From the IMG/VR virus record IMGVR_UViG_3300046653_000093, positions 151,809-215,808 of that record: a stretch of 64,000 nt of DNA. One strand, written 5' to 3'. The position numbers and the translations under genes were made by a program. Positions 6,747 to 43,511 of the stretch are shown piece by piece. The notes under the pieces are model-generated. The model worked only from the letters and a program-made list of their open reading frames with translations. It did not search any database and had not been told where the DNA came from. Each line of letters starts with the position of its first letter. Positions within the stretch are counted from its first letter, which is position 1.

Positions 6747-6786
6747 ACAATCTCAGCTTTGCATTAAACTTATGCTCAGATATGCG

Positions 6787-7596
6787 TTACAAAGCCTCGA
6801 TTTGATCCAGAATCGATATGGACTCACTTATTGCAATATTGGGATTTGTAACGGTTTCAGATCCCCATGCCCTGAAATCTACGCAAAAATTGATACGCTC
6901 TACTATATTTTCTATTGGAATTAGGCGTCTCCACTCTGTACGAATATCCACGGTAATGGTTGCTTTGTAGAGTTTATCTTGTTGCCTATCTTCGCCTTCA
7001 GAAATTCCGCCAAGGGTTGGCTGCCCAGATTTCACTAACACACCGGCTTTTCTCAAACTATCAAATCTGATATCGGTAAAAAGCAGCATCACCATACTTA
7101 CCAAATTATCCCTATCTAAAATATCTCGGCTTATTACATCAATTGAAATTGTGCCTTCCCATGCACCGGCAAGGTCAATATATTTTGGAATGAAGAATTC
7201 TTTAGCATTACCGTAGCCATCAACTACGAGTTGCTTTTCATGTTCCACCACATCCCTATTTCTGTTTATTGAAATAGGAACGGATCTGGCCGAAATCATT
7301 TTTACCAGAAGAGCAGGGTAGAATATTGCATCGAACCTGAACGCCTCGCCGATGAAGATACGAGTGGTTTGTTCATCATTATTGAGTCCCGCCTCTAATG
7401 ACAGATCTGTATGATCAGGAACTTTTGGATAGCCCCACTCATCAGCTACATAATGAAACCAAGAATCCTTCGCAAACTCTTCCCGGAGCATCCCGATGAT
7501 GAGTTCCTTAGGATAGGCCATCAGGGTGTTTTGAACAACATGATGGATCTGGTTCAGGTCATGCCTTACAAAGCTTCCAGTTCCCGGGGTGGTCAT
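6787..7596 (-). CDS. Putative tail completion/terminator protein
   Basis: Located upstream of sheath; YPALLV and WEGTISIDVISRDILDRDNL pattern reminiscent of tail terminators. Confidence 0.5.
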   Translation of the reverse strand: MTTPGTGSFVRHDLNQIHHVVQNTLMAYPKELIIGMLREEFAKDSWFHYVADEWGYPKVPDHTDLSLEAGLNNDEQTTRIFIGEAFRFDAIFYPALLVKMISARSVPISINRNRDVVEHEKQLVVDGYGNAKEFFIPKYIDLAGAWEGTISIDVISRDILDRDNLVSMVMLLFTDIRFDSLRKAGVLVKSGQPTLGGISEGEDRQQDKLYKATITVDIRTEWRRLIPIENIVERINFCVDFRAWGSETVTNPNIAISESISILDQIEAL

Positions 7597-7629
7597 ACCG
7601 AAATGCTGGATTATGGCGATACGAATAAT

Positions 7630-10600
7630 TTAGCCAAAGAATGGTCTTGGCCTATAAATTGTGATATTTGCCCACTTTGGATTTGATACATATACATTAC
7701 TTACAGTTATAAATCCAGTAGTTGTAGCCCCACCGACATATACATTGAGATCAAAAAAACCATCGGAAGCCATTACGTGATGTATTGGCATTATCACGGT
7801 ATACGTACCAGGAGTAAGTGGAGACATACTATATGTCTCCACTGGTACGGAATTTTCCGACGCAGCTGCGCTCAAAAACAAATCGCCACCTGATGGTACG
7901 AAAACCCTTAGATAAATTTCTGCAAAGATAGTATCGCCAGTCAAAAGACTTGTAGAATACTTAACATCATTTGATGATGTATCAGGTAGCGCTGTTGTTG
8001 GGATTGTTACCGGAGCCGTTGGGCTTTGATATGCAATTCTATTATTTCCAAAAGCTAAGCCATTGGTCGTAATTATATATTGGTCATCTATAACAAGATG
8101 ACTGAAAGCATTATCTCGCACCACGCTGTTTGGAGCATGAATCCAACCACCAAAACCAAGCGTGCCATTCTGATGCTCTAACGTATTTCCAACAACTACT
8201 GTAGGTTGCTCTGTTGCTATCGGGGGAGTAAAGAAATATATTCCCCAGCCATTTGTTGGAATATTCTTTATAACGTTACCAGTGATTGTGCCACCACAAC
8301 CCCAAATTGTTAGGTTGTAATCGAATCCATCAATCTGGTTTCCTGAGCATACAACAGAACCACCATCATTACTAGTAATAATTAGGCCAATTGGCGTAAA
8401 TGGATTTGGGGGGCCTGGAATCGGTATAAGCGACAAGAACATTCCTGTATAACCAAGAATGACAACATTTCCAGACACAACACTCTTGAATAATCCACTA
8501 CTAGAAGTAGCATCAGCCTTCAAGAAATATGCATGGTTGTTAGTTACAATATTCTCAACCGGGAACTCTGGTACATCTGTAACTCCAATGCCATATGTAT
8601 ATGGAGCCGCAAAGATATTTGCCGTTGCAGAAACGCCAGAATAAATAACCTCGGCTATATTATCCTGCACAAAGAATGATCCGCTCATAGCAACATTGAA
8701 TGGACTTCCCTGAACCATCCATCCTATGTATCCGAACCTGTTATTTCGAATGGATACATTAGAAACCAAAGCTCTGCTGCGTTGAAGATACTGTCCAGCA
8801 TTAAGGTTATCTGGAATCCATCTTGATGTGATAATCATTCCCTGTTGAGCATCAACAGTATTTCCTGATATTACAGTATCTATAAATAACTGACCATCAT
8901 TAGCTGGGTCTGTTTCTGTATTTATAAAAGCAAGTGCCAAAGCAGTAGTCGAATTACCAAGGCCAACTGGCGTGCCACCAACAACAACAGTTCCACTATC
9001 AGAAAACCTATTGTTTGTAAATTTTCCGTTAGCAAACTCAGACCCATTTCCATAAACAGCTATGAATGGAGGCCTTTTATTTGAATCTGCAAAGAAAACA
9101 CAATTATCCACTCCATAGTTATCAATGAATCCAAGATTGACCATATCTACCAATACAGCTCCCCAGTTTCCATCAGTGCCTGTCAGGCCAATCGCGCTGG
9201 TATTGAAGAACTCATCAGGATATGTAGTCGCATAGCTAGAAAATGAAGCATCACGGTGTGGATGGTAATTTATAGTAGCTTCTTCAATTCTCCAATTACC
9301 ACTCTTAAATGATAGCCCTTTGGCGCTATTTATCTCGTATGTTCCACCTTTAAGTGTAACAAAATTATTGAAGGCTAGTTGCATCTCGGAATTGATCGTT
9401 ACAGTTTTGACCTTTACCTCAGCAACTCCATATTCATTCACCCAGTTCACCAAAGCCTGTGGAGTAATAAAGTTGGCATTGTATCCGGCAACTTGTTCCG
9501 TTGATGCCCAGGTGAAAGAACCGATATCCTGGTTGATGACATGTCTACGGGCATCAGTCACCAACAATGAAGAGAAGCCACCAGGATCTCCAATAGTTAC
9601 CATGGCTTTAGCTATAATTGTAAGGTCTTTCCTAGTATCTACAATATTTCTAAATGACAGAGATTCCACAAAGTATAGGCTATTTACCTCAAAGAATTCT
9701 ACACCGGTATCTTTTACAATGGCTTTTAGCTGTCCCGTTTCAGTCACGCAAATGAAGAACTCAACAACGTTAGTGATAGAAGATCTAACTTCTGGCAGTT
9801 TTACTTCTAGAGAATCAACCGGAACAAATGCGCCATTTACAAGCGCCATACCACCATTAAAGGTTAGCACGGAATTTGTAGCATCTGAAAATCCAAACGT
9901 AAAGCCTCTAACAACACCATTGGTATGAAGATAACGCTCACCAGCCTCAATAAATTTGATAGCTGAATCTGTAAAGTTTTCCTCTGATAATGTACCAAAT
10001 TCTCTCAAATCTGTAACAGACATGAAAGCTTGATCATTGTGACTTACACCGGCTATAACGAAGTATTCCTCATTCTCTATTAGACTACCGAATAGCTCAA
10101 TGTACGTCCATCCCAAGGATGGTATCGTGGTACCAGGATCAGCAACATCGTCTCTAAACTCAATATCAATGAAATTAACAAAGGTAACATCATAAAGTCT
10201 AATTATGGAATTCTTCTTACCATTGACAACATTACCAATATTTGCGCCATTCAAATCGCTAAGGTATATAGTAAATTCACCAGTTGATGAGTTGTATCCA
10301 ATAACGTTAAGTGTAATGTAATTGCGGAAATTAGAGCCGCCATAACCCTTCAACTTTGGTGAGACTCTTCGAATATTCCATCCGGAAAGACCAGCAACTC
10401 CAGTGCCTCCAACACCACCAGATGCTGCACCTGGTATACCTGGCGTGTTAGTAATGCTATCACTCTTGGGAATTCTAGCGCGCTCAACAGAAACAGACTT
10501 ACCAAGGTTATTTATGAATACTTCATGATAGTGGTTGTATCCTAACGGATCGTCACCGACCATATTATTCAAATTGAAAAATACAGAATCATCTGAAAGA

Positions 10601-12716: not shown

Positions 12717-14531
12717 TTATATTCGAATAAACTCAAAATCTCCCCAATTGTTATTACTAACAAACATTTGAGTAATAATACCTGAATCTGAAACTCCAGC
12801 AGATGCCCAAACCTGCACACCAAATGCACCAGGTGATGACTGCGCTTGCCAATAAATAGGAATCGTAACATATTCAAGTGCAGTCGCTGCTATTTGAAGA
12901 GTAAAGTCAGCAACATCAACTGCATCTTCATAAACTCTAATATTAAGCAAAATAGTACCGGAGGTTACATTAACCTTGAAATATATATTTCCTCTAATAA
13001 TATCACCAGTAAGTACACCTGCCCAAGCAACATTTACAAAATTAGCATCAGTATCTTGTATTTGTATATATCCACCAGTGTTACTCACGGTAAAATTAAT
13101 TCCATTAGTCGGAAAACCTGATTGAGCCGCAACTGTTGGTTGTTGAATAACATTTCCGCCGGAAAGACGAGTTAGAATTGTATCTAATCCCTGCGAAAAA
13201 AGAACGCCGCCATTAACAAATAAATAAACGCCAGACGGAGCTGTAACCGGAACAGCAGCGCTTTCTGTTATCTGCAGCGTACTACCAGCAAAACTAACTT
13301 TCCCAAGATTTGAGTTTATGTTTACGTTACCATCGCCACTAAGATTGACACTGAATCCAGCGTTCAAATTTAAGTCTCCACCAATTCCGGTATTGCTATT
13401 TTGAGCTTGAATAGTTAATGGTTGACCAGTGGCTAATGAAACTTGAGTAGTATCTTGAGATATTGTTGGGGTAACATCATCTGCACTAAATATGACGTTA
13501 GATATGATATCACCTAAAAATGATATCCCTCCACCAGGCGAACTATATATATAAACATTTCCAGCCACATTGGTGTTCGGGTTATACCCAGACTCTAGCC
13601 ACAAATTACCAGGGCTTCCACCTGGGAAATGTGGTGCACCATTGATAATTGACTGAGCCCTAATAAACATATCAGTGGCAATTTCTACATCATGGTCCCC
13701 TTGCGATAATAGAGCCGGATAAGCCTTATCAAACATCAGGCCAGTAGCAATAACATCAACAATACCTGGATAGCTAGTTAGATATACATTTCCTTTTTGG
13801 CCATTAAGAGTATCTCCAGATTCAAGAAATAAATTGCTAGGAGATCCAGAAGTATTCGTATTTCTCTGAGAAACGATGCGTAAATCGTTAGCTGCTCCTG
13901 AAGTGCTAATGTCGGCTTGTGTTATAACCGGATCAATAACAGAACTATTGAATTGTAAAATAGGCGAAGTCAAATCAATTGGAGCATCTCCACTTATCAA
14001 ACGTAAAGTTCCCCAATTGGCCGATGTTGAAATATTAGTGCCAGAAGCCAGCCATAATTCACCACCAGTACCTGAGAAAACAGAGTCTAAATTACTTTGT
14101 GCTTGAATTAGAAAATATGGAGCCCCACCAGGATAATTAGCAGAATCTTGAGATATTAATGGATACGCAGCACTAGCATCAAATATCAAACCAGAATATC
14201 CTCCATCATAGCTTATCTTGAGAGGCGATGGCTCAATATCATTAGTAGTTGTGAACTCAATATCATTAGTAGTTGTGAACATCGGAATTGATCCGGGGTT
14301 CGTGTCGATACTCCACGGTGTTCCAAGAGTCACAACATTTCCAAGCGTAATTAATAGGTTGTACAAATCAACCAACGCTTGTTGAACGTTTCCTGAATAA
14401 ATCTCAGAGATATTGCTGGCTGGATGAATCCAATCCCCGCCGGTCACGTGGGCATTAAAGTCCTGCTTAGCCGTAGCGGAAAATCCAGCTTGAATAGTCC
14501 GATTAGAACCTATGAATCTAGTCCTTGCCAT
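12717..14531 (-). CDS. Fibre-like virion protein with internal ~70-aa repeats
   Basis: Recurring I-x-A-Q-S..G(N/E)LWLESG..GNVY; 604 aa. Confidence 0.55.
   Translation of the reverse strand: MARTRFIGSNRTIQAGFSATAKQDFNAHVTGGDWIHPASNISEIYSGNVQQALVDLYNLLITLGNVVTLGTPWSIDTNPGSIPMFTTTNDIEFTTTNDIEPSPLKISYDGGYSGLIFDASAAYPLISQDSANYPGGAPYFLIQAQSNLDSVFSGTGGELWLASGTNISTSANWGTLRLISGDAPIDLTSPILQFNSSVIDPVITQADISTSGAANDLRIVSQRNTNTSGSPSNLFLESGDTLNGQKGNVYLTSYPGIVDVIATGLMFDKAYPALLSQGDHDVEIATDMFIRAQSIINGAPHFPGGSPGNLWLESGYNPNTNVAGNVYIYSSPGGGISFLGDIISNVIFSADDVTPTISQDTTQVSLATGQPLTIQAQNSNTGIGGDLNLNAGFSVNLSGDGNVNINSNLGKVSFAGSTLQITESAAVPVTAPSGVYLFVNGGVLFSQGLDTILTRLSGGNVIQQPTVAAQSGFPTNGINFTVSNTGGYIQIQDTDANFVNVAWAGVLTGDIIRGNIYFKVNVTSGTILLNIRVYEDAVDVADFTLQIAATALEYVTIPIYWQAQSSPGAFGVQVWASAGVSDSGIITQMFVSNNNWGDFEFIRI
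14232..14279. repeat. Perfect 24-bp tandem duplication (in frame)
   Basis: ctcaatatcattagtagttgtgaa x2; encodes FTTTNDIE twice. Confidence 0.95.
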
Positions 14532-14555
14532 ATTCTAATGCCCCAATATTGCGAG

Positions 14556-15382: not shown

Positions 15383-17476
15383 CTATTCCATGTTTGATAG
15401 TATTATTGTGTGCGAATGATTTAAAACGGTACCCACAATACCCGCCGAGATCGGGTGGTTGTGCCCACGATCTATACTTGTCATTTGATTTATTTGGGAA
15501 ATATGCCTAATCTTCTCATTAATGGTGATTCTATGCATATGGGCGGGTATGCCTCCAGGGCCCATTACCATTCCAATGGAAGTAAGAATCTCAGATGGAA
15601 GAGTACTAGTGTCACGAATTGAACGAACTTGATAAATAGGATCTGTCTTACGTACACGTACTGCGGTGAACTTCTGAGCACCTGACTCAAAAAGCATAGT
15701 CCTATTTCTATCTACATCGATGATTTCATAACGCCATTCTTCAGTTCCATCTTGATTGAATCTGATTATAAAATCCCCATCCTTGACTGTTGGTGTCACC
15801 AACGTCCAACAATTAGCAATATAGGTATTCTCAATACCTGCGTCTTCACGTTTGAAATCTTCCTTGGTTGGTCCAAAGCGAACCAAAATCTTGCCGTCAC
15901 TTTCACGTGGATTGAAATATTGTTCATATCCAGTTACCAAAGAAGTTCCATAAGTATCTATTCCGCGATACGTTGTATTTTCGCGTGTAGAGCTGGTATG
16001 CCGCGATTGCTTTCCTGACCATTGACGTCGAAACAAAACTACCCGCTCTCCAGTGACCTGAAGTAGATACTCCTCTCTCATATCCATGTGTTCTTGAACG
16101 CTCAACCCGCGTACGGACCCATCACATTCCGATCCATCGGCATACTCTCCACCAAAATAGGTTCCTACGCACTTTCCTGATAACCAATCTGGCAAGAATG
16201 TACGATCCCAACCCGCTTGATCGTAGATTGGAAATCCGGCATTTGCAACATCTACAACATTGAGGTTGCCAGTTCCTGATAAGATATCTGTACGTTCCCG
16301 GAACCCATCTTTATTGGTTCTAGCATACTGCTCATCAAATCTGATGGTAACCATACCAATGGCCACATTAAGATCCTGCCAACCTTCCCAAAGGCGCACA
16401 AATGGATTGTCGTGATGATGTCGGTATCCGTCATATCCATCGATAGTATGCGGACGAGCACCGCTAGGGCCTCCATTAACCACATACCCATCAACATCCA
16501 CTAGAAAGTAGTCCCCACGTTTGAATGGAATCGTTCCATTATTAATGGCAAAACTCAAAATACCATTAGAAACAATAACTCCATCAGGATTCCATATTAC
16601 AGGATCTCCGTAGCCATCTAAAGCAGAGCCTGTTAGAGATCCAATCGCCCCAAACTTAGCATAGCCATCATTTTCAGAACCATCTAGCGAACAGAAAATC
16701 TTCCAATCTTGAATTATAGATTTTCCATCTATCAATTCCAAATTTGAAATATAGCCATTACCAACATTATTTCCAACACTATAACCATCTATATAAGATA
16801 GACTACTCAAAATATCATCTGATAAATAACCACGTTGTAATCCAGATAGATTTGGGAAAATCAAATATTCTGGACAATGACAATGATGCTCACGACGTTC
16901 TGAGCAATGGCAATGATGTCCCTTATCGCAATGGTGCTCTTCTGAGCAATTGCATTTTGGCCTTAATGTTCCAACATCAACATGAGAATAGAATATTAGT
17001 TCGTGTCCAATTTTGACAACTCCAATTGGCGGGAACCCGGCAACATCATTCAAATACATGATGTCATCGGTAGCTGTCATATTCTGAACCAAAACAGCTT
17101 CTGGGGCTATTTTAGATCCTGGATCGCCATCTAAGAGCTGATCGTATAGAAGCGTTCCGGATGCATATGCAGATCCCTTTACAGCAAAATAATAGGTTCT
17201 TCCAGGGCTAAATGCATCAAAAATATTAAGGGACAGAAACTGATCTTTGGTATTCGGCCTAACTATTAGCTTTACGCCCTCATCATAAATCTTAGTCTGA
17301 TTTGTAGACCAATATATGTTGTAAAAAAGATCCCAATTACCAGGCTGCTTTTGCTGAATGTATTCCTTGTACCATTGAAGCGCAACAGTATACCCATCCC
17401 CACCACATACCACTGTACGAACGCCATGGAGTGATGCGTCAAATGTACGCAGAAATACTGGAGGGTTGCATGCCAT
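15383..17476 (-). CDS. Putative neck/head-closure protein, multidomain
   Basis: FN3-like N-terminus (LQW..YNIYWS..PGRTYYFAVKG), His/Cys insert, a domain shared with the sheath, closure-like core (WTLVTPTVKDGDFIIR..WRYEI) and C-terminal HxH repeats. Confidence 0.5.
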   Translation of the reverse strand: MACNPPVFLRTFDASLHGVRTVVCGGDGYTVALQWYKEYIQQKQPGNWDLFYNIYWSTNQTKIYDEGVKLIVRPNTKDQFLSLNIFDAFSPGRTYYFAVKGSAYASGTLLYDQLLDGDPGSKIAPEAVLVQNMTATDDIMYLNDVAGFPPIGVVKIGHELIFYSHVDVGTLRPKCNCSEEHHCDKGHHCHCSERREHHCHCPEYLIFPNLSGLQRGYLSDDILSSLSYIDGYSVGNNVGNGYISNLELIDGKSIIQDWKIFCSLDGSENDGYAKFGAIGSLTGSALDGYGDPVIWNPDGVIVSNGILSFAINNGTIPFKRGDYFLVDVDGYVVNGGPSGARPHTIDGYDGYRHHHDNPFVRLWEGWQDLNVAIGMVTIRFDEQYARTNKDGFRERTDILSGTGNLNVVDVANAGFPIYDQAGWDRTFLPDWLSGKCVGTYFGGEYADGSECDGSVRGLSVQEHMDMREEYLLQVTGERVVLFRRQWSGKQSRHTSSTRENTTYRGIDTYGTSLVTGYEQYFNPRESDGKILVRFGPTKEDFKREDAGIENTYIANCWTLVTPTVKDGDFIIRFNQDGTEEWRYEIIDVDRNRTMLFESGAQKFTAVRVRKTDPIYQVRSIRDTSTLPSEILTSIGMVMGPGGIPAHMHRITINEKIRHISQINQMTSIDRGHNHPISAGIVGTVLNHSHTIILSNME

Positions 17477-17490
17477 AATTACATGCTGGA

Positions 17491-18078
17491 TTATCCTACA
17501 ACATTAATATCAACGTTGAATAGGCTCGCTAATTCCAGCAGTTTTTCACGTCTCTCATCTCTTTTTTTATCATCATCTTTATCACGTGTATGATGATCGA
17601 GCACCTGATCTACGTACTCCTCTGCCTCATCATCGCTTTTGGTATCAGAAATGTACTTAGTCTGATTGCGAAATCCTTCTTGTTCGGTAGGATTATCAAG
17701 ATAATTATCGTCAGTTGAACCAGGAGTTGCCTTGCTACCAGTAGTTTGCTGGCAAACATGAGTCATCTCATGCGGAAGATAATGATCATTTTCCTTCATC
17801 TTTTCATCGATATGAAGCCTTTCATGTGCAAGGTAATTATCATCATCTCCGCCGGTAAACAGGTCAACGTTCAAATAGATGACACCATGATCTGTACGCG
17901 CCGAAACTGGAATTTTGGCAACACAAATTGGCCACAAATCAAGCTCTTCTCTCTTGATATCATACTCCTTAAGCATGTCTTTGACTACATCGCTGTCAAA
18001 AACTCGCTTCTTGAGCTTATCAATAACAGGGGCCAGCTTCTTGTGTGGAAGGCCTTTGGTTACAATCTCTTCCGGCAT
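17491..18078 (-). CDS. Zn metallopeptidase-like protein (HExxH)
   Basis: GVIYLN..YLPHEMTHVCQ..YLDNPTEQEGF; start refined to MPEEIV. Confidence 0.65.
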   Translation of the reverse strand: MPEEIVTKGLPHKKLAPVIDKLKKRVFDSDVVKDMLKEYDIKREELDLWPICVAKIPVSARTDHGVIYLNVDLFTGGDDDNYLAHERLHIDEKMKENDHYLPHEMTHVCQQTTGSKATPGSTDDNYLDNPTEQEGFRNQTKYISDTKSDDEAEEYVDQVLDHHTRDKDDDKKRDERREKLLELASLFNVDINVVG

Positions 18079-18103
18079 AATAAAGTGCGGGAATATGCAG
18101 GGA

Positions 18104-18538: not shown

Positions 18539-18826
18539 TCAGCCTGGCGGCGGAGGTGGAGGCGGAGGTACATCTAGAGCATTTACAATTGGCATTAGCT
18601 TTGCCGGCAAGGTTCCCTTAAGTAATAAGGTTGTGCCTTGCAGTATCAACCATGGATCTCCTGGTAGAGCGCCACGAATTACCTTGAGAAACCCTCCCAG
18701 TTTAGGATGCTTAAGAACCCAAGTATCCAGTTGACTTCGATGTCCTAATAGTAGATTGCAAATATACAGTGAAATGATCGCAATCCAAACATAATGAACT
18801 GTAATAAATGTAATTATCTGCTGCAT
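18539..18826 (-). CDS. Small membrane protein (holin-like)
   Basis: Hydrophobic N-terminus, Pro-rich tail; start refined to MQQIITF. Confidence 0.4.
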   Translation of the reverse strand: MQQIITFITVHYVWIAIISLYICNLLLGHRSQLDTWVLKHPKLGGFLKVIRGALPGDPWLILQGTTLLLKGTLPAKLMPIVNALDVPPPPPPPPG

Positions 18827-18846
18827 ATAAATATGCACTGATATTA

Positions 18847-19758
18847 TTAGAATATTTGACGTTCGCGGAGATGGCGTAAACGGCGCACTTGAGGACTTGC
18901 ACCACCAACGAATGATAGGGTTCCAAGACCGAGGGGTGAGGGTTTCATGTTGTGCTTAATCAACTTACATTTTTCGTACCAAGCATCCATTTCACTTTTG
19001 TACTGAGTATTCAAAAGCTCTGCCTGTTGTGGTGGTGTAAATCCAATACCATTATCATTGATAGTGAACTCTCTACCACGCTCAATCAGAGCCTGGGCAC
19101 CTAAAGCCAAATACAACGATCCTTGAACCAAAATGTCATGGAATTGCTCAATAATTGGAGTATCATCCCAAGTGAATAGGGTAAAATGAGGTATCTCGTT
19201 GAACATGGTAAGAGATTCGCAGATAAAGGCTACCAATTCATCAACTGTAAATACATCGCAATCCTTGTAAATTGGATTGCCATGCTCATCCATTCTACGC
19301 GCCTTGCCACGAGCCTTGAGCCTTGCCCTTAGTGATTTCACTACATTGTTGATGTTACAGATGGCAATTTGACTAAAATTAAAGCCTGGGTCATCTCCTA
19401 GTTTATGTAACCCATCAGTATTGAGTCCTGGAAGCTGGGAGTTGAATGTAGTGAATGTATATTCACCAAGTATATTATATTCCTGATAGAGGCCACTCCA
19501 AGCATCTCTCCAAGTTCCAACTGGGGGATAAAGACCAACACAGTAATTGAATTGATATGTACCTACACCAATTCTCATGACGCCAGAACTGGTTGGACCA
19601 ACAGCAACGCCACCACTAGGCTGAATAACCGTGACAGTTGGAAAGCTGTCCAAGTCAACAGGAGATCCATCAATAGCGAATTTAGCCGCAAGAGCTACAA
19701 TGTCATTTGGTTGTATAATCTCTGAGCGAGGAAGAGTGGCCATACTTCTATGCGCCAT
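18847..19758 (-). CDS. Putative head-tail adaptor/neck protein
   Basis: Ig-like N-terminus (GVGTYQFNY..GTWRDAW) plus helical adaptor-like C-terminus; position in neck region. Confidence 0.5.
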   Translation of the reverse strand: MAHRSMATLPRSEIIQPNDIVALAAKFAIDGSPVDLDSFPTVTVIQPSGGVAVGPTSSGVMRIGVGTYQFNYCVGLYPPVGTWRDAWSGLYQEYNILGEYTFTTFNSQLPGLNTDGLHKLGDDPGFNFSQIAICNINNVVKSLRARLKARGKARRMDEHGNPIYKDCDVFTVDELVAFICESLTMFNEIPHFTLFTWDDTPIIEQFHDILVQGSLYLALGAQALIERGREFTINDNGIGFTPPQQAELLNTQYKSEMDAWYEKCKLIKHNMKPSPLGLGTLSFVGGASPQVRRLRHLRERQIF

Positions 19759-19779
19759 TAAGCGAAGAACTTTGCGTCT

Positions 19780-23294: not shown

Positions 23295-24200
23295 TTAGAC
23301 GGGACTAACCGAAGTAACACCAAATGGCCTTGATGCATTGATTGCATATGTTTCCCATTTGAATTTATATTCATTAAATGAGCTTTGTCCGCTGTTCCAT
23401 GTCCAAGCAATAATAGATTCATCGTATGAACTTGTACTCGCAAAAGCAAATTGTGTTGTTGTCTGAGATCCAGGGACAATGGTTATTTCACCAATAGAAC
23501 CAATAGAGGTCTCTCGGCTAAATGTGATTACAGCATCCTCTGGTAACCCTCCGGGAGGAGTTACTAACACGTAACCGTCAACCAGCGTGGCATATCCAAA
23601 ACCAACATCACTGCGTACTTCAACATCCTTTTCTGTCCAAGAAACAGAAGCTATGTATGTTCCAATCGCTGGGACACCATTAGGTATACACAGCCCATGT
23701 ATATATAATCCTGTGCCTATTCGAGTCATTAGCCTTGGATAATGAACGGCCTTTGAAAGGTCTGGAAATATTACTTGCTGAACAACTGGAACATAATATC
23801 CATCATTTGGCCCACGATGATTAACGTGAAAACAATCGTGATGATGACGGCGATGATGGTCATGACAATGATAACCATCAAAACAACTATCATGATCAAA
23901 ATGATTATGATAGTTGTGGTTATTCCACCATCTGTGCCATTCGTGACGATCTGTGGTGTGTCTTACACATGCCGTCCATAAATGATGGTGATGATGATGG
24001 TTAGAATATCCATCATATCCATCTGGATAGTATCCATCCGGTGGATCTGAATAATATCCGTCTGGCAGAAGATAGCCATAGCCATCTAGCCAATTTCCAT
24101 AGCCGTCCAAATCAGCAGGGTATCCGTTACTATCTAGCACTTGAACTATCAAACGAACCGTCTGTCCAGTATTAGCAAATATGTAATTTACAGAACCCAT
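23295..24200 (-). CDS. Virion protein with DGY-repeat and His-rich insertion
   Basis: 9 DGY motifs; His-rich segment including a His6 run; Ig-like segment (GTGLYIH..GTYIASVSW). Confidence 0.6.
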   Translation of the reverse strand: MGSVNYIFANTGQTVRLIVQVLDSNGYPADLDGYGNWLDGYGYLLPDGYYSDPPDGYYPDGYDGYSNHHHHHHLWTACVRHTTDRHEWHRWWNNHNYHNHFDHDSCFDGYHCHDHHRRHHHDCFHVNHRGPNDGYYVPVVQQVIFPDLSKAVHYPRLMTRIGTGLYIHGLCIPNGVPAIGTYIASVSWTEKDVEVRSDVGFGYATLVDGYVLVTPPGGLPEDAVITFSRETSIGSIGEITIVPGSQTTTQFAFASTSSYDESIIAWTWNSGQSSFNEYKFKWETYAINASRPFGVTSVSPV

Positions 24201-24214
24201 GCCTATATGCCCGG

Positions 24215-24781
24215 TTATTCGTCGTCAATATTTTTCTTGAAAATAGGATCTACGGCCAAAATCGGAGCACGATCTGCCGCATCCATATCTGCATTTTCTG
24301 CGGCAAAATCTTCAGCAGACCCCTCATCCATATCCAAATCAGGAAACTCAACTTGTTCAATCTCTGGTGGTTTCCTAACAGTACGAGTTGAACCCATATC
24401 CAAAACATGAGCCACTTCAATCTTCTTGGTAAATATCTGGGGCGCTACAGACCTAATCTTGATATGCTGTCCTTTCTTGTAAATTGAACCGCTTTGAATG
24501 CTATCATCAATCTGCTTTTTTGTGATATTATACATGGATAAGCCATTTTTCTTTTTAGCAAGCAAATTTAAGCTTTGCCCACGGCGAACTGTAATGGCTA
24601 GATCACTAATTGTAATATCTTGAAAACGATTTATATTCGTAACCCAAAGCTCTTCCGGCTTGGCTAGAGGATAAAACCTTTCCTGCAATCTCTGGCTACT
24701 ACTTTTCAACTTTATCCTCAGATACAATGGCACAATCGCAGACGGTTGTGCTGTCAGCTTCGCTGACAACAGATACTTCAA
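24215..24781 (-). CDS. Hypothetical protein (start uncertain)
   Basis: 188-aa ORF in operon orientation; acidic C-terminus. Confidence 0.5.
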   Translation of the reverse strand: MKYLLSAKLTAQPSAIVPLYLRIKLKSSSQRLQERFYPLAKPEELWVTNINRFQDITISDLAITVRRGQSLNLLAKKKNGLSMYNITKKQIDDSIQSGSIYKKGQHIKIRSVAPQIFTKKIEVAHVLDMGSTRTVRKPPEIEQVEFPDLDMDEGSAEDFAAENADMDAADRAPILAVDPIFKKNIDDE

Positions 24782-24977: not shown

Positions 24978-25021
24978 AATCTTCCTCTTAGCAGGTATAA
25001 CCTGCGGCTTTCAGAATTATG

Positions 25022-25321
25022 CTAATATATTGCCTTCTTTTTGAGACCAATCTTAATTTCCAAAATCTCTCGCATTAGCAGACATGCAGCAAATTCTGCC
25101 AAATCACTATAATGTTTCTCAAGAAAAGCCGTATCGTCCCATGCGAAATTGGTAAAGGGCAGAATAGAATTGAATCTAGAAAGTGCTTGATTGGCAAATT
25201 CCACCAATTGGTCTGTTGTATACACGTCATATTCACGATGACATGTATCTAGTCTCAATTTAATCAGCTTCAGAACAATATTGATATTGTTAATGGCTAC
25301 TTGACTATAATCATCAATCAT
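25022..25321 (-). CDS. Short neck/adaptor paralog
   Basis: DVYTTDQLVEFANQALSRFNSILPFTNFAWDD aligns with DVFTVDELVAFICESLTMFNEIPHFTLFTWDD of 18847..19758; start refined to MIDDYSQ. Confidence 0.55.
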   Translation of the reverse strand: MIDDYSQVAINNINIVLKLIKLRLDTCHREYDVYTTDQLVEFANQALSRFNSILPFTNFAWDDTAFLEKHYSDLAEFAACLLMREILEIKIGLKKKAIY

Positions 25322-29814: not shown

Positions 29815-29852
29815 ATCTACAACATGCATAAATATTAGGTATACAATTATAA

Positions 29853-31211
<1,359 letters not shown>

Positions 31212-31580: not shown

Positions 31581-31662
31581 TATAACCTCAAATACATACA
31601 AAAATATACCATTGAGCCTTCTAAAACTTAAATATCAAGCTAGAACATCCATATCTATTATA

Positions 31663-32445: not shown

Positions 32446-32516
32446 AAAACCCCTCGCACATGCTGGCGTAGCCGCTGGTTTATCAACAACATACAAAAAT
32501 ATCCGTTGCGCTTCAT

Positions 32517-34684: not shown

Positions 34685-34730
34685 GTTAACCTCAAATATT
34701 TAGCTCCATATATTTACTTACAACAATGAT

Positions 34731-34743
34731 ATGCAAAAATATT
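34731..34743 (-). promoter_or_regulatory. Putative late promoter element AATA-N5-GCAT (representative copy)
   Basis: TA-N5-GCAT found upstream of at least 12 gene starts; see findings. Confidence 0.6.
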
Positions 34744-34751
34744 CGTTGCAT

Positions 34752-34782
34752 AAACAAAAAGCCCCGGTTTGCACCGAGGCTC
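34752..34782 (-). terminator. Rho-independent terminator after major capsid gene
   Basis: Minus strand GCCTCGGT-GCAA-ACCGGGGC followed by TTTTTGTTT. Confidence 0.85.
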
Positions 34783-34813
34783 TCTGTATTCATTTTGAAC
34801 TAACTAGCTAGCA

Positions 34814-35815: not shown

Positions 35816-35874
35816 ATATAATCTCCTAATGTTTGTTTGTAAGCTGCCAAAATCCATCAACAGCTAGCGGAAGA

Positions 35875-35895: not shown

Positions 35896-35914
35896 AAATC
35901 CATATATCGATCAA

Positions 35915-37284: not shown

Positions 37285-38524
37285 TTAATCCTAAATTAGC
37301 AAGCAATTCGTTATTAAGATCACCCATCGATGGCTTTTGTGGGGTTGGCTGATTTGAGGCAATTTGAGCGTTAGTATTCGTCGGCTTTGGTTGCGCTTCT
37401 TTCGATGCGGCCTGAGCTAATGTCTCATGAATTTCTGGAGTCTTTTCTTTGGCGACATCAATAGCGCCTTGGAACTTTACAAGCTCTTGATCAATCGCCC
37501 CCAACAAACCTCCACTTGTGCTCTCTTGCTTTCCAGGGGCAAATTGCTTGATGGTAGAAAATACATCGGCTTTACCTTCAAGGGCATAGATAAGTGTCTC
37601 TTCTGGAGTATCTGTGAATGAACGTGTAAGAGCGTGCAGCTTTGCTGACCAGGAACCTCTTTCCTCGGTATCTTCACTAGCCATAATACGAATCGCACTA
37701 GCCCATCCTTTGATAGCTCCTTTGATTTTGGCCAATTGATTCATGTAATTTGTAACTATTTGATGAGCGGCTTCAGCCTTCTTCTTTTCATCTTCTTGCT
37801 GAGCGGCAGAAATTGATTCATCAACAGAATGAATTGGAACAAGTTGAGTCTTTACATTGTATACTTGCTTTGCCATATTCATTGCATTAATCATATCTCT
37901 TCTGATTGGAGCTGCATAGGCTCGATCAGATAATGGATTAAGTGCAGTTATTACCTTCTGAGCATTTTGATAAACGTCCTCAGCTGGAGGAGCTCCCGAG
38001 AAGAAATAATAACCCAGCCCCAATACTGCTGCCGCTATGCCGGCTACTGCTAAAGGGGCAATTGCCTCCTTTTTCATCTGGCGCTCTTCCAAACGCTGAG
38101 CACAAGAATCAGCAAGTACCATCAACTTCTCTTCTTCTTGACTGTCAAGCGTAAACGCTGACCTTATCAAAGAATCTAAAAGTTCTTTTTTTGCCGCAAC
38201 ATATCGCCTTTGTGTCAGTTGCCCATTCGGCATCTTCAACGCAATATAGGCCATCATGTCCTGATGCTGTTGTTCATTTTCAACAACAGAATTCATTGCA
38301 TCATAAGCACGACCAACTGTAGCTGTTTCTGGATGAGCAAATTCAACAATGTTCTTTTTCTTTTCCGGCTCTGGCTCGATGTTGTATAGCAAACGAATAG
38401 CATCGTCGGAAAGTGAGTCATAACTTCGCGGCAAAGTGCCAGATTGGCCATCCTCTTCGGCCACCGAAATTAGCCCTTGAGCAACGGCTATCTTTTCAAA
38501 TTCATCCCAAATATCATGGCTCAT
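37277..38524 (-). CDS. Putative internal head/ejection protein with TM segment
   Basis: KKEA followed by hydrophobic IAPLAVAGIAAAVLGLGYYFF; start refined to MSHDIW. Confidence 0.5.
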   Translation of the reverse strand: MSHDIWDEFEKIAVAQGLISVAEEDGQSGTLPRSYDSLSDDAIRLLYNIEPEPEKKKNIVEFAHPETATVGRAYDAMNSVVENEQQHQDMMAYIALKMPNGQLTQRRYVAAKKELLDSLIRSAFTLDSQEEEKLMVLADSCAQRLEERQMKKEAIAPLAVAGIAAAVLGLGYYFFSGAPPAEDVYQNAQKVITALNPLSDRAYAAPIRRDMINAMNMAKQVYNVKTQLVPIHSVDESISAAQQEDEKKKAEAAHQIVTNYMNQLAKIKGAIKGWASAIRIMASEDTEERGSWSAKLHALTRSFTDTPEETLIYALEGKADVFSTIKQFAPGKQESTSGGLLGAIDQELVKFQGAIDVAKEKTPEIHETLAQAASKEAQPKPTNTNAQIASNQPTPQKPSMGDLNNELLANLGLNG

Positions 38525-38525
38525 A

Positions 38526-39599
38526 TTATTTTCTCCCTTCATTCACGGATTTGAAAACATCATCAATGAACAGCTTCACAACCTCATCCCTTGATTTGTA
38601 GGGATCTGGAATAACCACTTCAAGTTGCCCAGGTTTCCAGTCCTCTGTTATTTCACGGACGGCATTCCAAAAAGAAGGTGTATTCAATATAATGCTTTTA
38701 TATTGGTCTAGACTTGGATATGACTGCAATGCCCATTTCAAAAGCATTTCGTGAGGTTGCTGTCCATTTAGTTCTTCAACCCACATGTCACCTGGTTTTG
38801 TTTTGTAAACATAAGAATTCACACCAGTAGGAGCTGGCGTCTGAGAACTACTAACCTGAGGTGCAGATGCTGCTGGTGTAATAGATCCTTGTCCAACTTC
38901 ACCTGGCTTCTTTGAAAATGCTGAGGTAGCAACTCCAGCTACCGCAAGCAAACCAGCAGATAGAAGTATCGTTTTCAAGAACCACGACAGCAAGCCAACA
39001 ATTATATTGCCCCTTCGTCTCGCACTAAATAGATTAAGTAAACCCTTCAATGGATTAAGCCAACCGCCTTCTGCACGATTGCGCTCAAGATATGAATTAC
39101 TTTTACCTATTGCTTCTTTGGTAAGTTGGCCTTTATTCCTCATCGCTCGTAATGGATAGAAAAGGTCATCAGCTTCGCCCTCTTCTGGCTGAGGTTCTGT
39201 TGAAGAGGTCTCTGAAGCTTCAGGTATGGCGGCTTGAGCTGCATTATTAATCTGCTCAGCGGTTACTGGTTTACCAGCCTCGATATCCGGCAAAATGGCA
39301 TTCTTAATTTTCTCGTAGATTGCTGTAAGATCATATCCAAAATGCTCTGCTATAGCAACCAAAGCGCCTAGTAAGGGATGAATACCAAAAAACAATGCTG
39401 GGGCTAAAAGATCTACAATCTTTCTTGGAGTGCTATAGTTTCCACCTACCAACGAAGAAACTTCATTACCAATACTTGGCAGAATAGCCGCTAGATCAAA
39501 AGCGTACTTCTCAAACCGATTGTCATTAAATTCAGCAAGAACCTGAAACGTTTCTTCAAGCAGAATTGTATCGGATACATACTGAATATCACCATTCAT
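38526..39599 (-). CDS. Putative internal head/ejection protein with TM segments
   Basis: Hydrophobic LLAPALFFGIHPLLGALVAIA and IIVGLLSWFLKTILLSAGLLAVAGVA; KYA and KEA motifs. Confidence 0.5.
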   Translation of the reverse strand: MNGDIQYVSDTILLEETFQVLAEFNDNRFEKYAFDLAAILPSIGNEVSSLVGGNYSTPRKIVDLLAPALFFGIHPLLGALVAIAEHFGYDLTAIYEKIKNAILPDIEAGKPVTAEQINNAAQAAIPEASETSSTEPQPEEGEADDLFYPLRAMRNKGQLTKEAIGKSNSYLERNRAEGGWLNPLKGLLNLFSARRRGNIIVGLLSWFLKTILLSAGLLAVAGVATSAFSKKPGEVGQGSITPAASAPQVSSSQTPAPTGVNSYVYKTKPGDMWVEELNGQQPHEMLLKWALQSYPSLDQYKSIILNTPSFWNAVREITEDWKPGQLEVVIPDPYKSRDEVVKLFIDDVFKSVNEGRK

Positions 39600-41401
39600 T
39601 ATTGTCCTTTTCTAGCCCTTTCCATTCTTTCTTTATACTCTCTTCCCCAAACGCCAAGCAGACCCCTAATCTTATCTTCCCACTTACCAAGAAAATCATG
39701 CTGCTTTTCAAGGGTTGATTGAAGTTCATTATACTTTTGCTCCAGCAATCTATCATCATGCTTACCGCGCTCTTTCCAATCATTAAACTGATTGATTGCA
39801 GTAGTGCTCCACTCATTATAGATGTCCCTCAATGAGTCCCTAACCGCCGCTGCCCATGGCCCAAAATTCGCATATTTTTCAGCATCATTAGTACCAGCTA
39901 CATTACTTAGAGCTATTTGTTCCCATCCACCAAATGACCAATCCTTAATATTTAGTTGTGGTAACAAACCTCCAATAGTCAAATCAGAAACAGATTTGCT
40001 TTGTCTGCTAGGAAAGTTCTGCATGATGATAAAATTACCAAGAGGTGGCCCTTGATTTGTTCTACCATAAGTATGTCCACTACTACCCTCACCTTCGCCC
40101 TCATCGCGTCGCTGATGAGCTTTACCAGTAGTTCCACCAGCTCCAGTGCCATGCAAAAGTTCCCTAATCATCTTCCTGGTTACAACTGGAACTTTTGGAT
40201 TACCACTAGCTTTGATAGCTTTTATTAGATCGTTCTTTATATCATTCCAAGCATTGGATATACTTTCCATTTGTTGGGCATAAAACTTACCAAGTTGAGC
40301 ATCATATTTATTTGCAATCTTACCTTTCCTATCTGGTCGTGGACTTGGCAAAGATCCTGGCTTTCCAGCGGTTCCATTCCACGCCCCATATAGTGCATCA
40401 AATTCTGCGTTTGCTCTTTGCAAAAACCATTTGATACTATCTTCAATAACACTCAGGCAGTGTGAATCAGAAGATTGAGCAGGGGCAACTGGAGCGGCCA
40501 CGACTGGAGCAGCGTCTTGTCCTAATCGGAAAATAGTTCTATCCAAAATCTCACTTGCCAATTTTCCGAAATAATCATCTAATGCCGCAGTAGCTGGAGC
40601 TTTAGCGGGAGCTAGTTTAGGAGCAGGCTGAGGTTCGGAATCTAATGGATTACAAGGGAAGTGAGGTTTCAGCCCACTCATAAAATCAAAGAAGCTTAGA
40701 AGATCTGCTAAATCTCCCATTGTTACTGGATGACGTCCCCAACCAACACCAAACGGATCTGATAAACCAGAATCTGGAAGAGATGGATCAATAACATCAA
40801 CAACAATCATTCCAGATCCCTCGGCAACAGATTCAACAGATGTTTGAATGCCAAGCGCACCGAATATTCTTGAGATGTTGTTTATGTTCTCACGAGCCTT
40901 CTCAATCAACTCTGCATCTTTCATTGATTGATATGGAATCGTACCAGTGCCTTCAGAAATTATTACGTCCTTGATGTTTAGCTGGGTCACCAAAGTCTTA
41001 ATTGCAACAAGTGCATCATGGGTATTCTTTCCCCATACACCATCGGCAGCTGCTGCACGCGATGAAGCCGACGATCCTGTTCTGGCAAAATGCACAGCCT
41101 GATCTGTAATGAGCTTAGCAGTCACCTTGGTATTTGGATCTTGTTGCTGTAAAGTGATAACAACTGATTGAGCAACATCTGGTTTACTTAGCTGAGTTCC
41201 TAAATCAACCATTAGGTTTTGCATTGTAGCAACTGTGCCATCAACATCTTTGTTGGTTGATTTAACGCCACCGGCAGGGGCTCCTCCACCACTAGGTGCG
41301 GCTCCGCCATGTCCACCAGGAATATGAGCCTTTCCTGTAACGCCACCACCGCCGACGCCAACCCAAGAGGCTACGTCCTGCCCAGCAAACTTAGAAGTCA
41401 T
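39599..41401 (-). CDS. Putative ejection protein with peptidoglycan-binding-like motif
   Basis: ADGVWGKNTHDAL (DGxxGxxT pattern of PG_binding_1 domains); 600 aa. Confidence 0.45.
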   Translation of the reverse strand: MTSKFAGQDVASWVGVGGGGVTGKAHIPGGHGGAAPSGGGAPAGGVKSTNKDVDGTVATMQNLMVDLGTQLSKPDVAQSVVITLQQQDPNTKVTAKLITDQAVHFARTGSSASSRAAAADGVWGKNTHDALVAIKTLVTQLNIKDVIISEGTGTIPYQSMKDAELIEKARENINNISRIFGALGIQTSVESVAEGSGMIVVDVIDPSLPDSGLSDPFGVGWGRHPVTMGDLADLLSFFDFMSGLKPHFPCNPLDSEPQPAPKLAPAKAPATAALDDYFGKLASEILDRTIFRLGQDAAPVVAAPVAPAQSSDSHCLSVIEDSIKWFLQRANAEFDALYGAWNGTAGKPGSLPSPRPDRKGKIANKYDAQLGKFYAQQMESISNAWNDIKNDLIKAIKASGNPKVPVVTRKMIRELLHGTGAGGTTGKAHQRRDEGEGEGSSGHTYGRTNQGPPLGNFIIMQNFPSRQSKSVSDLTIGGLLPQLNIKDWSFGGWEQIALSNVAGTNDAEKYANFGPWAAAVRDSLRDIYNEWSTTAINQFNDWKERGKHDDRLLEQKYNELQSTLEKQHDFLGKWEDKIRGLLGVWGREYKERMERARKGQ

Positions 41402-43122
41402 TATTTTCTCCCTTTGGCAGATTCTACAATTTTTCTCACACTGGACAAGAATATGTTCTTGTTAGGAGCATCAATGCCCATATCAGAAAGAGCCTCTTGA
41501 AGTTCAACCCATGGCTTGTTCTGATACTCATCAATAATTTCTTTGAGTTGTTGTATCTTGTTAGAAATATTCACTGCTTTCTTAGCCACGTCTATATCTT
41601 CGCTTTGTGTTTGTTCGCCCCAATATGTAGATGCCGCTTCAAGCTGTGATGTATCCATAGTAAATGGCTGAAGCTGATCTGAGCTCGCCATAGACTTGTA
41701 TTGATCCGAAATGGAGGTTCTTATACCATTTACCCAATTAACTATCTGATCAATAAGACCGGCATTCACTGCTCTCATTTGGCTGAATGTTGGTTCCTTG
41801 CTAAACTTAGCTAAAGCATCACTAATATCTTTTCCAATTCTAATCAATTGCCTCAGCGCAGTACTTACATCAGTTAGCCTGTCACCAGTCTTGATAGCAT
41901 TCAACTCGGTATACAATCTTTCAGGAAGACTTCTCATTACTGTTTGAGCTTTCACAATCGTATCGTTGTTTTCTCCAAAAGCAGATACATATACAGCTCT
42001 AACCTGTTGGGCTAGCCATTGACAAGCGGCCCAAGCATTATCATTATTTGTAGCAAACTGAATTCCGCCAGCAAAAATGTAGGATGAATCGTTGTTAGGA
42101 TTCATATAAGTAGATTCAAAAACCTGGCCAATACCAATGGCAGTAGATATCTTGCGAAGTGTATCTACTTGTGCCGTTGGAATAAGAGCATGAGCATTTT
42201 GTAGTTTTGTATATAGCGCTTCTGCAGTAACAGCTGGAACTTCGCCTTGCGTCAAAACACCTTCTGCGACAGCAACCTGTGCTACATTATTCCAAGAAGT
42301 AATGCTTCTTGGATTAACCTGAATGCCAGCTAAACGAGCAAAATAAATATATGCCGCTTGTTGCTCTGTGCCTGCCGGATCTGTAAGAATAAATGCGTCT
42401 AAAGACGGAGCGCTCTTTCTGGCAGTGTCAAACTCTTCTAATGTGGTTTGGACATTTGCAAGAATAGCCCTTCTTGTCTTCGGAGTTTCTCTACTTACAG
42501 TTGATGTTATTGGCGATATGCTTTGCTGGGGAGCTGCCTCTGAGGCAGCTGGTCCTCCTTGAGGCGCTCCTCCTTGGGAAGATGTATAATATCCTGGCGC
42601 TCCGCCCTCTTGCGCAACCTTATTAATCATCGAGGCCAATGTGGCCAATCGATTCATAGCCTGCTTTCCTGTAGGCTCCTTACGAGTTACAGCAAGAATT
42701 TTATCAGCGATACTCTGCATCGTTTCAAATGTTCCAAGATCTCCAGAACCCTCAATGAGATTCACGTCTCCATCGCGATGCGCAAAGTTAATCAAATCTT
42801 TATTTGTCTCTTGAGTAACATTATAAAATGCATTTTCTGCTTGCTTGAACATAACCAGCTTTTTTTCAAGATCTTCAGCTTGAACAATAAGACCTTTTCG
42901 TCTCATTGCATAAGCTAAGCGGGCGACATCAACAATGAGATCTTCAGAGGGAGAAGCATCAACTTCTTGATTGATGATTCTGGTTTGTTCAACCTCTTGG
43001 GCTGCAAGCTTAATTAGCTCGGAATCTGTGGGTTTGAAAAATCCCTTCTTCACAGCCTGACGCTCAAGTTCGCGGTATACTTCAGACTGATATAGATTAT
43101 CTGTATATTTTGAAAGCGTCAT
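41401..43122 (-). CDS. Putative internal head/ejection protein
   Basis: Helical; KLA and KVA motifs; FAHRDG resembles FAHPET in the 37277 gene; start refined to MTLSKY. Confidence 0.5.
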   Translation of the reverse strand: MTLSKYTDNLYQSEVYRELERQAVKKGFFKPTDSELIKLAAQEVEQTRIINQEVDASPSEDLIVDVARLAYAMRRKGLIVQAEDLEKKLVMFKQAENAFYNVTQETNKDLINFAHRDGDVNLIEGSGDLGTFETMQSIADKILAVTRKEPTGKQAMNRLATLASMINKVAQEGGAPGYYTSSQGGAPQGGPAASEAAPQQSISPITSTVSRETPKTRRAILANVQTTLEEFDTARKSAPSLDAFILTDPAGTEQQAAYIYFARLAGIQVNPRSITSWNNVAQVAVAEGVLTQGEVPAVTAEALYTKLQNAHALIPTAQVDTLRKISTAIGIGQVFESTYMNPNNDSSYIFAGGIQFATNNDNAWAACQWLAQQVRAVYVSAFGENNDTIVKAQTVMRSLPERLYTELNAIKTGDRLTDVSTALRQLIRIGKDISDALAKFSKEPTFSQMRAVNAGLIDQIVNWVNGIRTSISDQYKSMASSDQLQPFTMDTSQLEAASTYWGEQTQSEDIDVAKKAVNISNKIQQLKEIIDEYQNKPWVELQEALSDMGIDAPNKNIFLSSVRKIVESAKGRK

Positions 43123-43123
43123 A

Positions 43124-43447
43124 TTAATCCTCAAGGTCAAGCAGTGCTAAGCCATTCAAAAAGTTTGGATCTACCTTATCTTTCAGCTCTGGGTGTTGCT
43201 TTATTGCATCCGCCGCCTTTTTGAGATATGCTTTCAACGCGGGGTCACTGGCAACCTTCTCGCGAAAAGCTTCAATATCAGCCATCACTTGGTTCTCATG
43301 ATCGATAGCAGCGGTAACAGCATTCACCTTCTGAAGTTGCTCTCGCGCAAGCTCAGCTTGAGAATAGTTTCTCCACACTTCCGAGCTATTCATCACTCGT
43401 CTAGTCTGGTCATCGTCGAAAAAATCCTTCCAAACCTGATCGTTCAT
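43124..43447 (-). CDS. Hypothetical protein
   Basis: SSEVWRNY resembles QSEVYREL in the next gene; preceded by TA-N5-GCAT motif. Confidence 0.55.
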   Translation of the reverse strand: MNDQVWKDFFDDDQTRRVMNSSEVWRNYSQAELAREQLQKVNAVTAAIDHENQVMADIEAFREKVASDPALKAYLKKAADAIKQHPELKDKVDPNFLNGLALLDLED

Positions 43448-43511
43448 GTAAAACACCTTTAAATATGGCTATGGCAAACCTATTGGTATGCTTAGTTAGT
43501 GATAGTTTTCC

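Follow-up and report, generated by a model that had tools for sequence, protein, structure and literature searches.

What is the short element that recurs upstream of genes near the end of a large peat-virus record, and what might read it? The stretch analysed here, hereafter the window, comprises 64,000 nucleotides (nt) and is the final 64 kb of the 215,808-bp IMG/VR virus record IMGVR_UViG_3300046653_000093 (G000; positions 151,809 to 215,808). All of its real genes lie on the minus strand, and among their products are a tail sheath, a collagen-like fibre, a large protein bearing a carbohydrate-esterase domain, a cold-shock protein and a homing endonuclease of the LAGLIDADG type. An earlier note on the window had described an (A/C/G)(A/C)TA-N5-GCAT element on the minus strand upstream of gene starts, in several cases only 6 nt before an ATG without a Shine-Dalgarno (SD) sequence, and had read it as a putative phage late promoter recognised by a phage-encoded sigma factor or RNA polymerase. 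We find that the signal is real and that it is probably a compact, phage-specific promoter without a -35 box, belonging to a clade of huge peat phages, from which transcription would start 7 nt past the tetramer and which would be read by the host core polymerase together with a sigma factor of the phage. Almost nothing is known of gene regulation in uncultivated huge phages, and the motif offers an initial map of this clade's transcription units.

We found that G000 matches part of a longer contig of 391,957 bp (G1) at 99.997% identity, and the completeness of G1 is estimated at 91%. The window DNA occurs in peat metagenomes, with 20 of the 21 listed runs holding the stretch or part of it and most of them being labelled peat metagenome. 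The comparisons were conducted on four related genomes, namely G1 and three relatives assembled from IMG/VR (G2, G4 and G5), whose tested proteins are approximately 60-76% identical to those of G1, and two further genomes of 27.5% (G6) and 31% GC were held out of model building. Gene calls were our own longest open reading frame (ORF) calls, for which an alternative genetic code was not needed. A nucleotide search of a phage collection with 7 kb of the window as query returned no match, and neither the Rfam nor the tRNA scan of the window gave a hit.

All 12 canonical sites of the earlier note carry the described sequences at exactly the minus-strand positions given, and the GTAT variant at 15375-15387 was likewise confirmed. 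Upon partitioning the window by gene content, we observe 10 minus-strand and no plus-strand matches in its 1,841 intergenic bases, against 0.28 expected from the in-gene density (Poisson, p = 7e-13), whereas the in-gene matches (13 on the minus and 6 on the plus strand) are at background density; the motif is thus not equally common within genes or on the opposite strand, and it is strictly oriented toward genes.

The strongest part of the original claim is the fixed 6-nt gap to an ATG that lacks an SD sequence, and the spacing counts across genomes uphold it. Anchoring the count on true starts in G000, we find GCAT-N6-ATG 13 times, versus 0-3 times at other spacings. Across genuine starts of the four genomes, TA-N5-GCAT stands 6 nt before the ATG in 25 cases, while every other distance from 2 to 25 nt yields at most 4, and the tetramer variants GTAT and ACAT contribute 8 and 7 further cases at the same distance. 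The N6 peak emerges in each genome separately (G1, 17; G2, 6; G4, 4; G5, 6) and is reproduced in both hold-out genomes. The start codon that follows the motif at N6 is ATG in 40 cases, GTG in two and TTG in none.

The pattern of the earlier note was too loose, in that it missed the G at -20, the A at -18 and the pyrimidine at -1. The refined consensus is G-(a/c)-A-T-A-W-N4-[G/A][C/T]AT-N5-Y-R (W, A or T; Y, pyrimidine; R, purine), in short GAATAW-N4-GCAT. Positions that had not been selected for are informative, with G at -20 in 21 of 33 sites, A at -18 in 24, A or T at -15 in 30, and also T at -14, while the invariance of T at -7 was set by the search pattern and is hence not an independent result. 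A pyrimidine occupies -1 in 31 of the 33 sites, versus 51% of other ATG starts (p = 5e-7). The two halves, GNAT and GCAT, form a direct repeat whose members lie 10 bp, one helical turn, apart. Three other accounts of the motif were rejected: its TA coincides with the stop codon of an upstream gene at only two window sites, its genes are not mostly homing endonucleases (one clear and one weak case), and a likeness to sigma-54 (-24/-12) or sporulation-sigma (GCATA at -35) promoters fails on spacing.

Next, we considered whether the element might act in translation, as a ribosome-recruiting signal other than SD or as a RegA-like translational operator at the starts of internal cistrons. Its placement invites this reading, as GCAT at -10 to -7 stands where an SD sequence would lie and, among G000 starts, equals any SD core in frequency there, its N6 distance to the ATG is strict, and the genes concerned lack an SD sequence: SD-like cores are found at 3 of 40 motif starts compared with 508 of 858 (59%) other ATG starts (p = 2e-11). 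These ATG codons are themselves the true starts, because the N-termini of the 298-amino-acid (aa) and 301-aa proteins align from Met1 with those of SD-led orthologues. To our knowledge the anti-SD region offers no obvious complement to GCAU, and the motif is also found 9-100 nt before genes that have an SD sequence of their own. Among orthologues, it is retained when an SD leader intervenes before the ATG. One case is the 298-aa gene, for which, in eight related contigs, three lineages carry the motif with N6 and the ATG, and four others have an SD leader of 13-17 nt between the motif and the ATG, with an identical start codon and N-terminus. Overall, the motif is retained in 21 of the 38 orthologue pairs of motif genes versus 39 of 792 control pairs (p = 3e-16), where the pairs are not fully independent of each other. 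The SD-leader sites, together with this retention despite changed leader length, favour a promoter over a translation signal, which we regard as the least probable of the explanations weighed here.

The leader-bearing sites were recovered with a position weight matrix (PWM) that covers -20 to -7 only and is therefore blind to the ATG, though it was trained on sites picked by pattern. At a score of at least 14, matches in 1.01 Mb fall 28 times in intergenic DNA, which makes up 5.7% of positions, 6 times in genes in sense and 4 times in antisense orientation, whereas 200 column-shuffled matrices give a mean of 0.8 and a maximum of 4 intergenic matches. Outside the training set there are 16 intergenic matches, most of which front leaders of 9-15 nt that begin at or just before the SD sequence (for example in G2, G4 and G5). 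Additionally, a Y-R step lies exactly five bases after the tetramer in 12 of 26 leader-bearing sites, compared with approximately 20% at other offsets (p = 0.002). A motif that does not depend on the distance to the gene and is tied to a fixed point 7 nt downstream behaves as a promoter with a defined start would.

A constant distance from the tetramer to the Y-R step would also be produced by a sequence-specific endoribonuclease that cuts polycistronic RNA at this step and leaves leaderless or short-leader mRNAs. In favour of this reading, intergenic spacers are very short with the motif partly within the upstream gene, and terminators are rare, so that long transcripts are likely. At the window motif 34731-34744, however, a strong intrinsic terminator lies 13 nt upstream, so there would be little upstream RNA to be processed at this site, and we know of no nuclease that recognises a bipartite 14-nt site upstream of the position it cuts. 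The terminator case and the leader-bearing sites together weaken both the processing and the translation accounts, and we consider RNA processing quite unlikely. A second terminator-like, GC-rich hairpin (GGAGGGG...CCCCTCC with a T-rich tail) is found at 35861-35914 (-), between genes 35915-36610 and 34814-35860. A general scan for consensus promoters and terminators was uninformative except for a depletion of sigma-70 consensus promoter matches in window positions 25001-45000 (27 versus 46 +/- 7.5 expected from shuffles), which we count in favour of the proposed promoter.

We propose that the promoter would carry its information between -20 and +1, with G(-20), A(-18), T(-17), A(-16) and W(-15) followed by four variable bases, a tetramer at -10 to -7 (GCAT, less often GTAT, ACAT or ATAT), five further variable bases and the Y-R step at -1/+1. 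Transcription would start 7 nt past the tetramer. For approximately 40 genes of the four genomes the predicted start base is the A of the ATG, which would give a leaderless mRNA without an SD sequence, and other genes would have the same element followed by an SD-bearing leader of 9-40 nt. The predicted geometry is that of a sigma-70-type -10 element, with the last base of the element at -7, a 6-nt discriminator, a Y-R start and the upstream extension at the extended -10 position; if +1 is the A of the ATG, then the tetramer ending at -7, the pyrimidine at -1 and the A at +1 all fit this arrangement. The genes behind the motif agree with the late class suggested earlier, as they include tail, baseplate and fibre genes and a lysin-like gene.

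We then asked which factor might read such a promoter, for which the earlier note had suggested searching the genome for a sigma or polymerase gene. One sigma-70-family gene was found. It lies outside the window (G000:100304-100963), encodes 219 aa, matches the Sigma70_r2 and r4_2 domains and scores above the TIGR02937 cut-off, and three relatives (G4, G5 and G6) conserve it at 60-62% identity. A profile built from the four sigma orthologues finds its best matches, from region 2 onward, in solved chains of RpoS and SigA, with the RpoS matches ending at profile position 142-144, and by our reading the match extends into region 3.0. Region 3.0 of sigma-70 reads extended -10 elements, and its presence would fit a promoter that has no -35 box and in which a -10-like tetramer ends at -7 and an extension occupies -17 to -15. 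The most likely reader would thus be the core RNA polymerase of the host with the phage's own sigma-70-family factor, in line with the sigma half of the earlier proposal.

The other half, a polymerase encoded by the phage, could take the form of a T7-like single-subunit enzyme or, as in phiKZ and AR9, a divergent multisubunit one, in either case escaping detection. All the information lies within -20 to +1, as is generally the case for T7-type promoters. Furthermore, the layout resembles that of the AR9 late promoter, AACA-N6-T-A/G(+1) (PMC5312081). We found no match to the beta and beta' domains (RNA_pol_Rpb2_6, PF00562; RNA_pol_Rpb1_2, PF00623) in G000, G1 or G2, while the controls were positive in 14 of 14 genomes; this negative is limited by the 91% completeness of G1 and by the strong divergence of phiKZ-type subunits. 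The T7-type domain (RNA_pol, PF00940) was not matched in the same three genomes either, with the control genomes silent too, and none of ten large ORFs scanned is polymerase-like. These searches weaken the account, as does the conserved sigma gene, which implies use of the host core enzyme, and we therefore judge a phage polymerase to be very unlikely.

Several observations weigh against the promoter and its proposed reader. The A at -11, nearly invariant in -10 elements of the sigma-70 family, is only weakly enriched (14 of 33 sites), and no -35-like element is seen although the sigma factor appears to keep region 4. The loose TA-N5-GCAT pattern alone does not place leader-bearing sites clearly above chance genome-wide (25 intergenic versus approximately 15 expected), and these sites stand out only with the fuller matrix. 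Terminators are rare (25 of 1,281 genes), and a terminator followed by the motif is convincing at one site only. Among the 21 listed runs no RNA run is on record for this DNA. Finally, the single detected sigma factor has an equally plausible target in a second conserved upstream word, GTCGAGA(A/G), which stands 30-50 nt ahead of many starts in G1 and G5, in every case oriented with the gene and mainly in the non-structural half of the genome (G000:1-125000, outside the window), and which is enriched in intergenic DNA of G5; one copy is found in the window at approximately 27609-27615 (-), upstream of gene 27053-27565. This word is probably another promoter class (early or middle) or an element of 5' untranslated regions (UTRs).

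The poor conservation of A(-11) would suit an operator, in which the 10-bp direct repeat GNATA-N5-GCAT binds a tandem phage activator or repressor on one face of the DNA and overlaps the real promoter of a late regulon, with RNA polymerase recognising another element. The halves are alike and one helical turn apart, many sites read GCATA...GCAT, and the link between sigma factor and motif is one that we infer. Between -50 and +12 around the sites, though, no other conserved promoter element is visible, and a fixed distance to the Y-R step and the ATG is expected of an element that determines the start site. We consider an operator unlikely, and a compact promoter read through the phage sigma factor the explanation to prefer.

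A more far-reaching possibility, which we regard as doubtful, is that these approximately 400-kb peat phages possess a dedicated leaderless regulon, in which a direct-repeat, -35-less promoter of new specificity, read by a divergent phage sigma factor, would place +1 on the start-codon A of dozens of structural, lysis and homing-endonuclease genes and so free their expression from SD/anti-SD pairing. If this were true, translation initiation could be the level at which the class is controlled, or favoured, late in infection. The approximately 40 predicted leaderless genes beside SD-led orthologues offer a system in which the interconversion of leaderless and SD-dependent initiation in evolution can be followed, and the motif is a concrete DNA target for testing the specificity of the conserved phage sigma factor.

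The motif also helps to correct gene-start calls. Judged by the motif, the longest-ORF calls misplace several starts in the window by 4-20 codons, the true starts being 18826, 19743, 29814 and, probably, 18078, the last for ORF 17491-18138. Among the sites listed earlier, those with an ATG at 7596, 14531, 15368 (GTAT), 17476, 18826 and 24200 are good examples of the leaderless type, and those at 6772, 25019, 34731 and 43488 are good or plausible leader-bearing sites (Table 1). The motif is present at 29824-29836 as well, with the ATG at 9 nt and not at 6 nt. The site at 32460-32472 is weak, 32491-32504 being the better candidate, and 36743-36755 has the wrong spacing to the T-purine step and lies 130 nt from the gene. 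Two sites had been missed, a perfect one at 19750-19763 (ATG 19743) and a GCAC variant at 18085-18098 (ATG 18078).

Table 1. Motif sites and the associated terminator in the window (coordinates of the window; leaders and start bases are predicted; a dash within an element marks spacing).
Coordinates	Strand	Element	Downstream gene or ORF	Score	Remarks
7596..7616	(-)	CCATAATCCAGCAT-N6-ATG, leaderless type	6787-7596, 269 aa	PWM 16.3	Predicted start, A at 7596; G4 orthologue keeps motif and N6
14531..14551	(-)	CAATATTGGGGCAT-N6-ATG, leaderless type	12717-14531, 604 aa		
15368..15388	(-)	GTAT variant GAATAGTTCAGTAT-N6-ATG	14556-15368, LAGLIDADG homing endonuclease		G2 orthologue has SD instead
17476..17496	(-)	GGATAATCCAGCAT-N6-ATG, leaderless type	15383-17476, 697 aa	PWM 17.2	
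18078..18098	(-)	Candidate GCAC variant GCATATTCCCGCAC-N6-ATG 18078	ORF 17491-18138		Weaker than other sites
18826..18846	(-)	TAATATCAGTGCAT-N6-ATG 18826	18539-18826, 95 aa		L003 relative keeps GCAT-N6-ATG, not TA
19743..19763	(-)	GCTTAATGGCGCAT-N6-ATG 19743	18847-19743, 298 aa		Highly conserved structural protein
24200..24220	(-)	GAATAACCGGGCAT-N6-ATG	23295-24200, 301 aa	PWM 16.7	C at -1; motif and N6 kept in G2, G4, G5, G6
29817..29837	(-)	TAATATTTATGCAT, ATG 9 nt past tetramer	29260-29814		Predicted 3-nt leader; -1/+1 is A-G; weaker site
6765..6785	(-)	GCATATCTGAGCAT-N5-T-A	228-aa gene and overlapping tail sheath gene 3595-6060	PWM 14.8	Predicted 19-nt leader to ATG 6746
25012..25032	(-)	CAATATATTAGCAT-N5-T-G	24699-24977, cold-shock protein		35-nt leader with hairpin and SD
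31589..31609	(-)	Candidate GTAT variant	31212-31580	10.4	9-nt leader starting GAGG
32484..32504	(-)	Candidate GTAT variant GGATATTTTTGTAT-N5-T-G			39 nt before ATG 32445
34724..34744	(-)	GAATATTTTTGCAT-N5-T-G	34358-34684	PWM 14.7	40-nt leader with SD
34752..34786	(-)	Intrinsic terminator, GC-rich hairpin and U-tract			-30.4 kcal/mol, z = -4.15; 0/200 shuffles fold as well
43481..43501	(-)	CACTAACTAAGCAT-N5-T-A	43124-43441	10.3	25-40 nt leader with SD AAGGTG; weakest leader-bearing site

Upon closer examination of single sites, the motif before ATG 14531 is kept in relatives at 83% identity (L003, L004 and L005) and at approximately 65% (L006) while its flanks diverge. At ATG 17476 the TAA stop codon of the upstream gene lies inside the motif, and relatives have TAATCTAGTAT-N6-ATG in G2 and the motif at N7 in G5. 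When motif-led proteins were scanned against PHROG and Pfam, most had weak matches or none, the exceptions being the endonuclease with LAGLIDADG, the cold-shock protein, the sheath, a glucosaminidase resembling a lysin and the collagen-like fibre. The cold-shock-protein gene sits inside the tail module with a motif of its own (leader 24978-25012 (-)). The LAGLIDADG gene 14556-15368 (-) is free-standing between the 697-aa and 604-aa structural genes, a position identical in G2, where a second copy (G2:176152-176937) differs in position and orientation.

We also observe (G)ATATAG(G/A) words 6-20 nt before many SD-led structural starts on the minus strand, for example at 58729-58757, 60627-60660, 52379-52410, 27033-27052 and 2892-2929. 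Their identity with the GCAT motif is partly supported: GCAT and ATAT swap at one orthologous gene set, whereas TA-N5-ATAT peaks at N14 before the ATG and not at N6, and most ATATAG sites have no TA at the right distance. The words may be a leader-bearing variant of the GCAT promoter or a separate late class.

Elsewhere in the window, in the overlap of ORFs 1907-2311 and 2232-2891, positions 2120-2168 (-) hold a motif-like site followed by a tiny 9-codon ORF that is conserved nearly base for base in G4; this stretch, just downstream of the sheath/tube region, may represent either the frameshift region of a tail chaperone or a conserved small gene. Outside the window, G1:83338-98923 and 4130-6508 (loci L008 and L012) carry type I-C-like CRISPR-Cas genes, namely Cas8c/Csd1 (E = 3e-120) and two Cas3-like HD helicases, as well as an SNF2 helicase, an FtsH-like protease, a NAD synthase, a major-vault-protein-like protein and a ribonucleotide reductase split by an intein with LAGLIDADG domains, and G1 elsewhere also has further genes typical of huge phages.

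Finally, we compared the element with known systems. T4 late promoters have TATAAATA at -10, read by the sigma-family protein gp55, and T4 late mRNAs have SD leaders. Like these, the peat-phage element is compact, lacks a -35 box, lies near the start and precedes structural or late genes, presumably with a host core enzyme and a phage sigma-family factor. It differs in that its sequence is unrelated, the sites following GAATAW-N4-GCAT and not the T4-type TATAAATA consensus at -10 (we agree with the earlier note that the motif resembles neither this nor the sigma-70 consensus), that it is bipartite and spans -20 to -7, and that most copies are fused to the start codon; moreover, the peat-phage sigma factor, unlike gp55, has region 2 and a region 4-like domain. 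Promoters of T7-type single-subunit polymerases extend from -17 to +6, and they share with the element a continuous layout of approximately 20 bp, an upstream part rich in AT and, near -10, a tetramer that confers specificity, but the predicted start here is usually A and not G, and a T7-like polymerase was not found (with a silent search control). In mycobacterial leaderless genes, a -10 element TANNNT lies a few bases upstream of the start codon. The likeness to actinobacterial leaderless genes is that a -10 element ends approximately 7 nt before an ATG that would serve as both transcription and translation start, with no SD sequence, while the -10 sequence differs and the peat-phage sites form a phage-specific class beside many SD-led genes in one genome; in Actinobacteria leaderless transcripts are abundant (PMC4633059).

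Among phages, P23-45's middle and late promoters fall into the extended -10 class (PMC7403470), and with them the element shares -35 independence, an extra conserved element just upstream of the -10 and membership, here probable, of a phage late class. Its extension, in contrast, is TAW at -17 to -15 rather than TG at -15/-14, its tetramer is GCAT rather than TATAAT-like, and P23-45 uses the host sigma A remodelled by gp39, whereas here the phage sigma factor is the candidate. The layout is closer to that of AR9 and phiKZ, also jumbo phages: a conserved tetranucleotide stands approximately 10 bp before a T-purine start without a -35 element, as in the promoter of the AR9 non-virion RNA polymerase, and the late TATG motif of phiKZ overlaps the start site (PMC4666361). 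The peat-phage element differs from AR9 in having N5 and not N6 and another tetramer, and AR9 transcripts are not leaderless, with 5' UTRs of 26-491 nt (PMC5312081); furthermore, AR9 and phiKZ promoters need a phage multisubunit polymerase, none of which was detected in G000, G1 or G2. Overall, the element is best filed among the phage-specific -35-less promoters, from which it is set apart by its bipartite direct repeat and its systematic fusion to the start codon.

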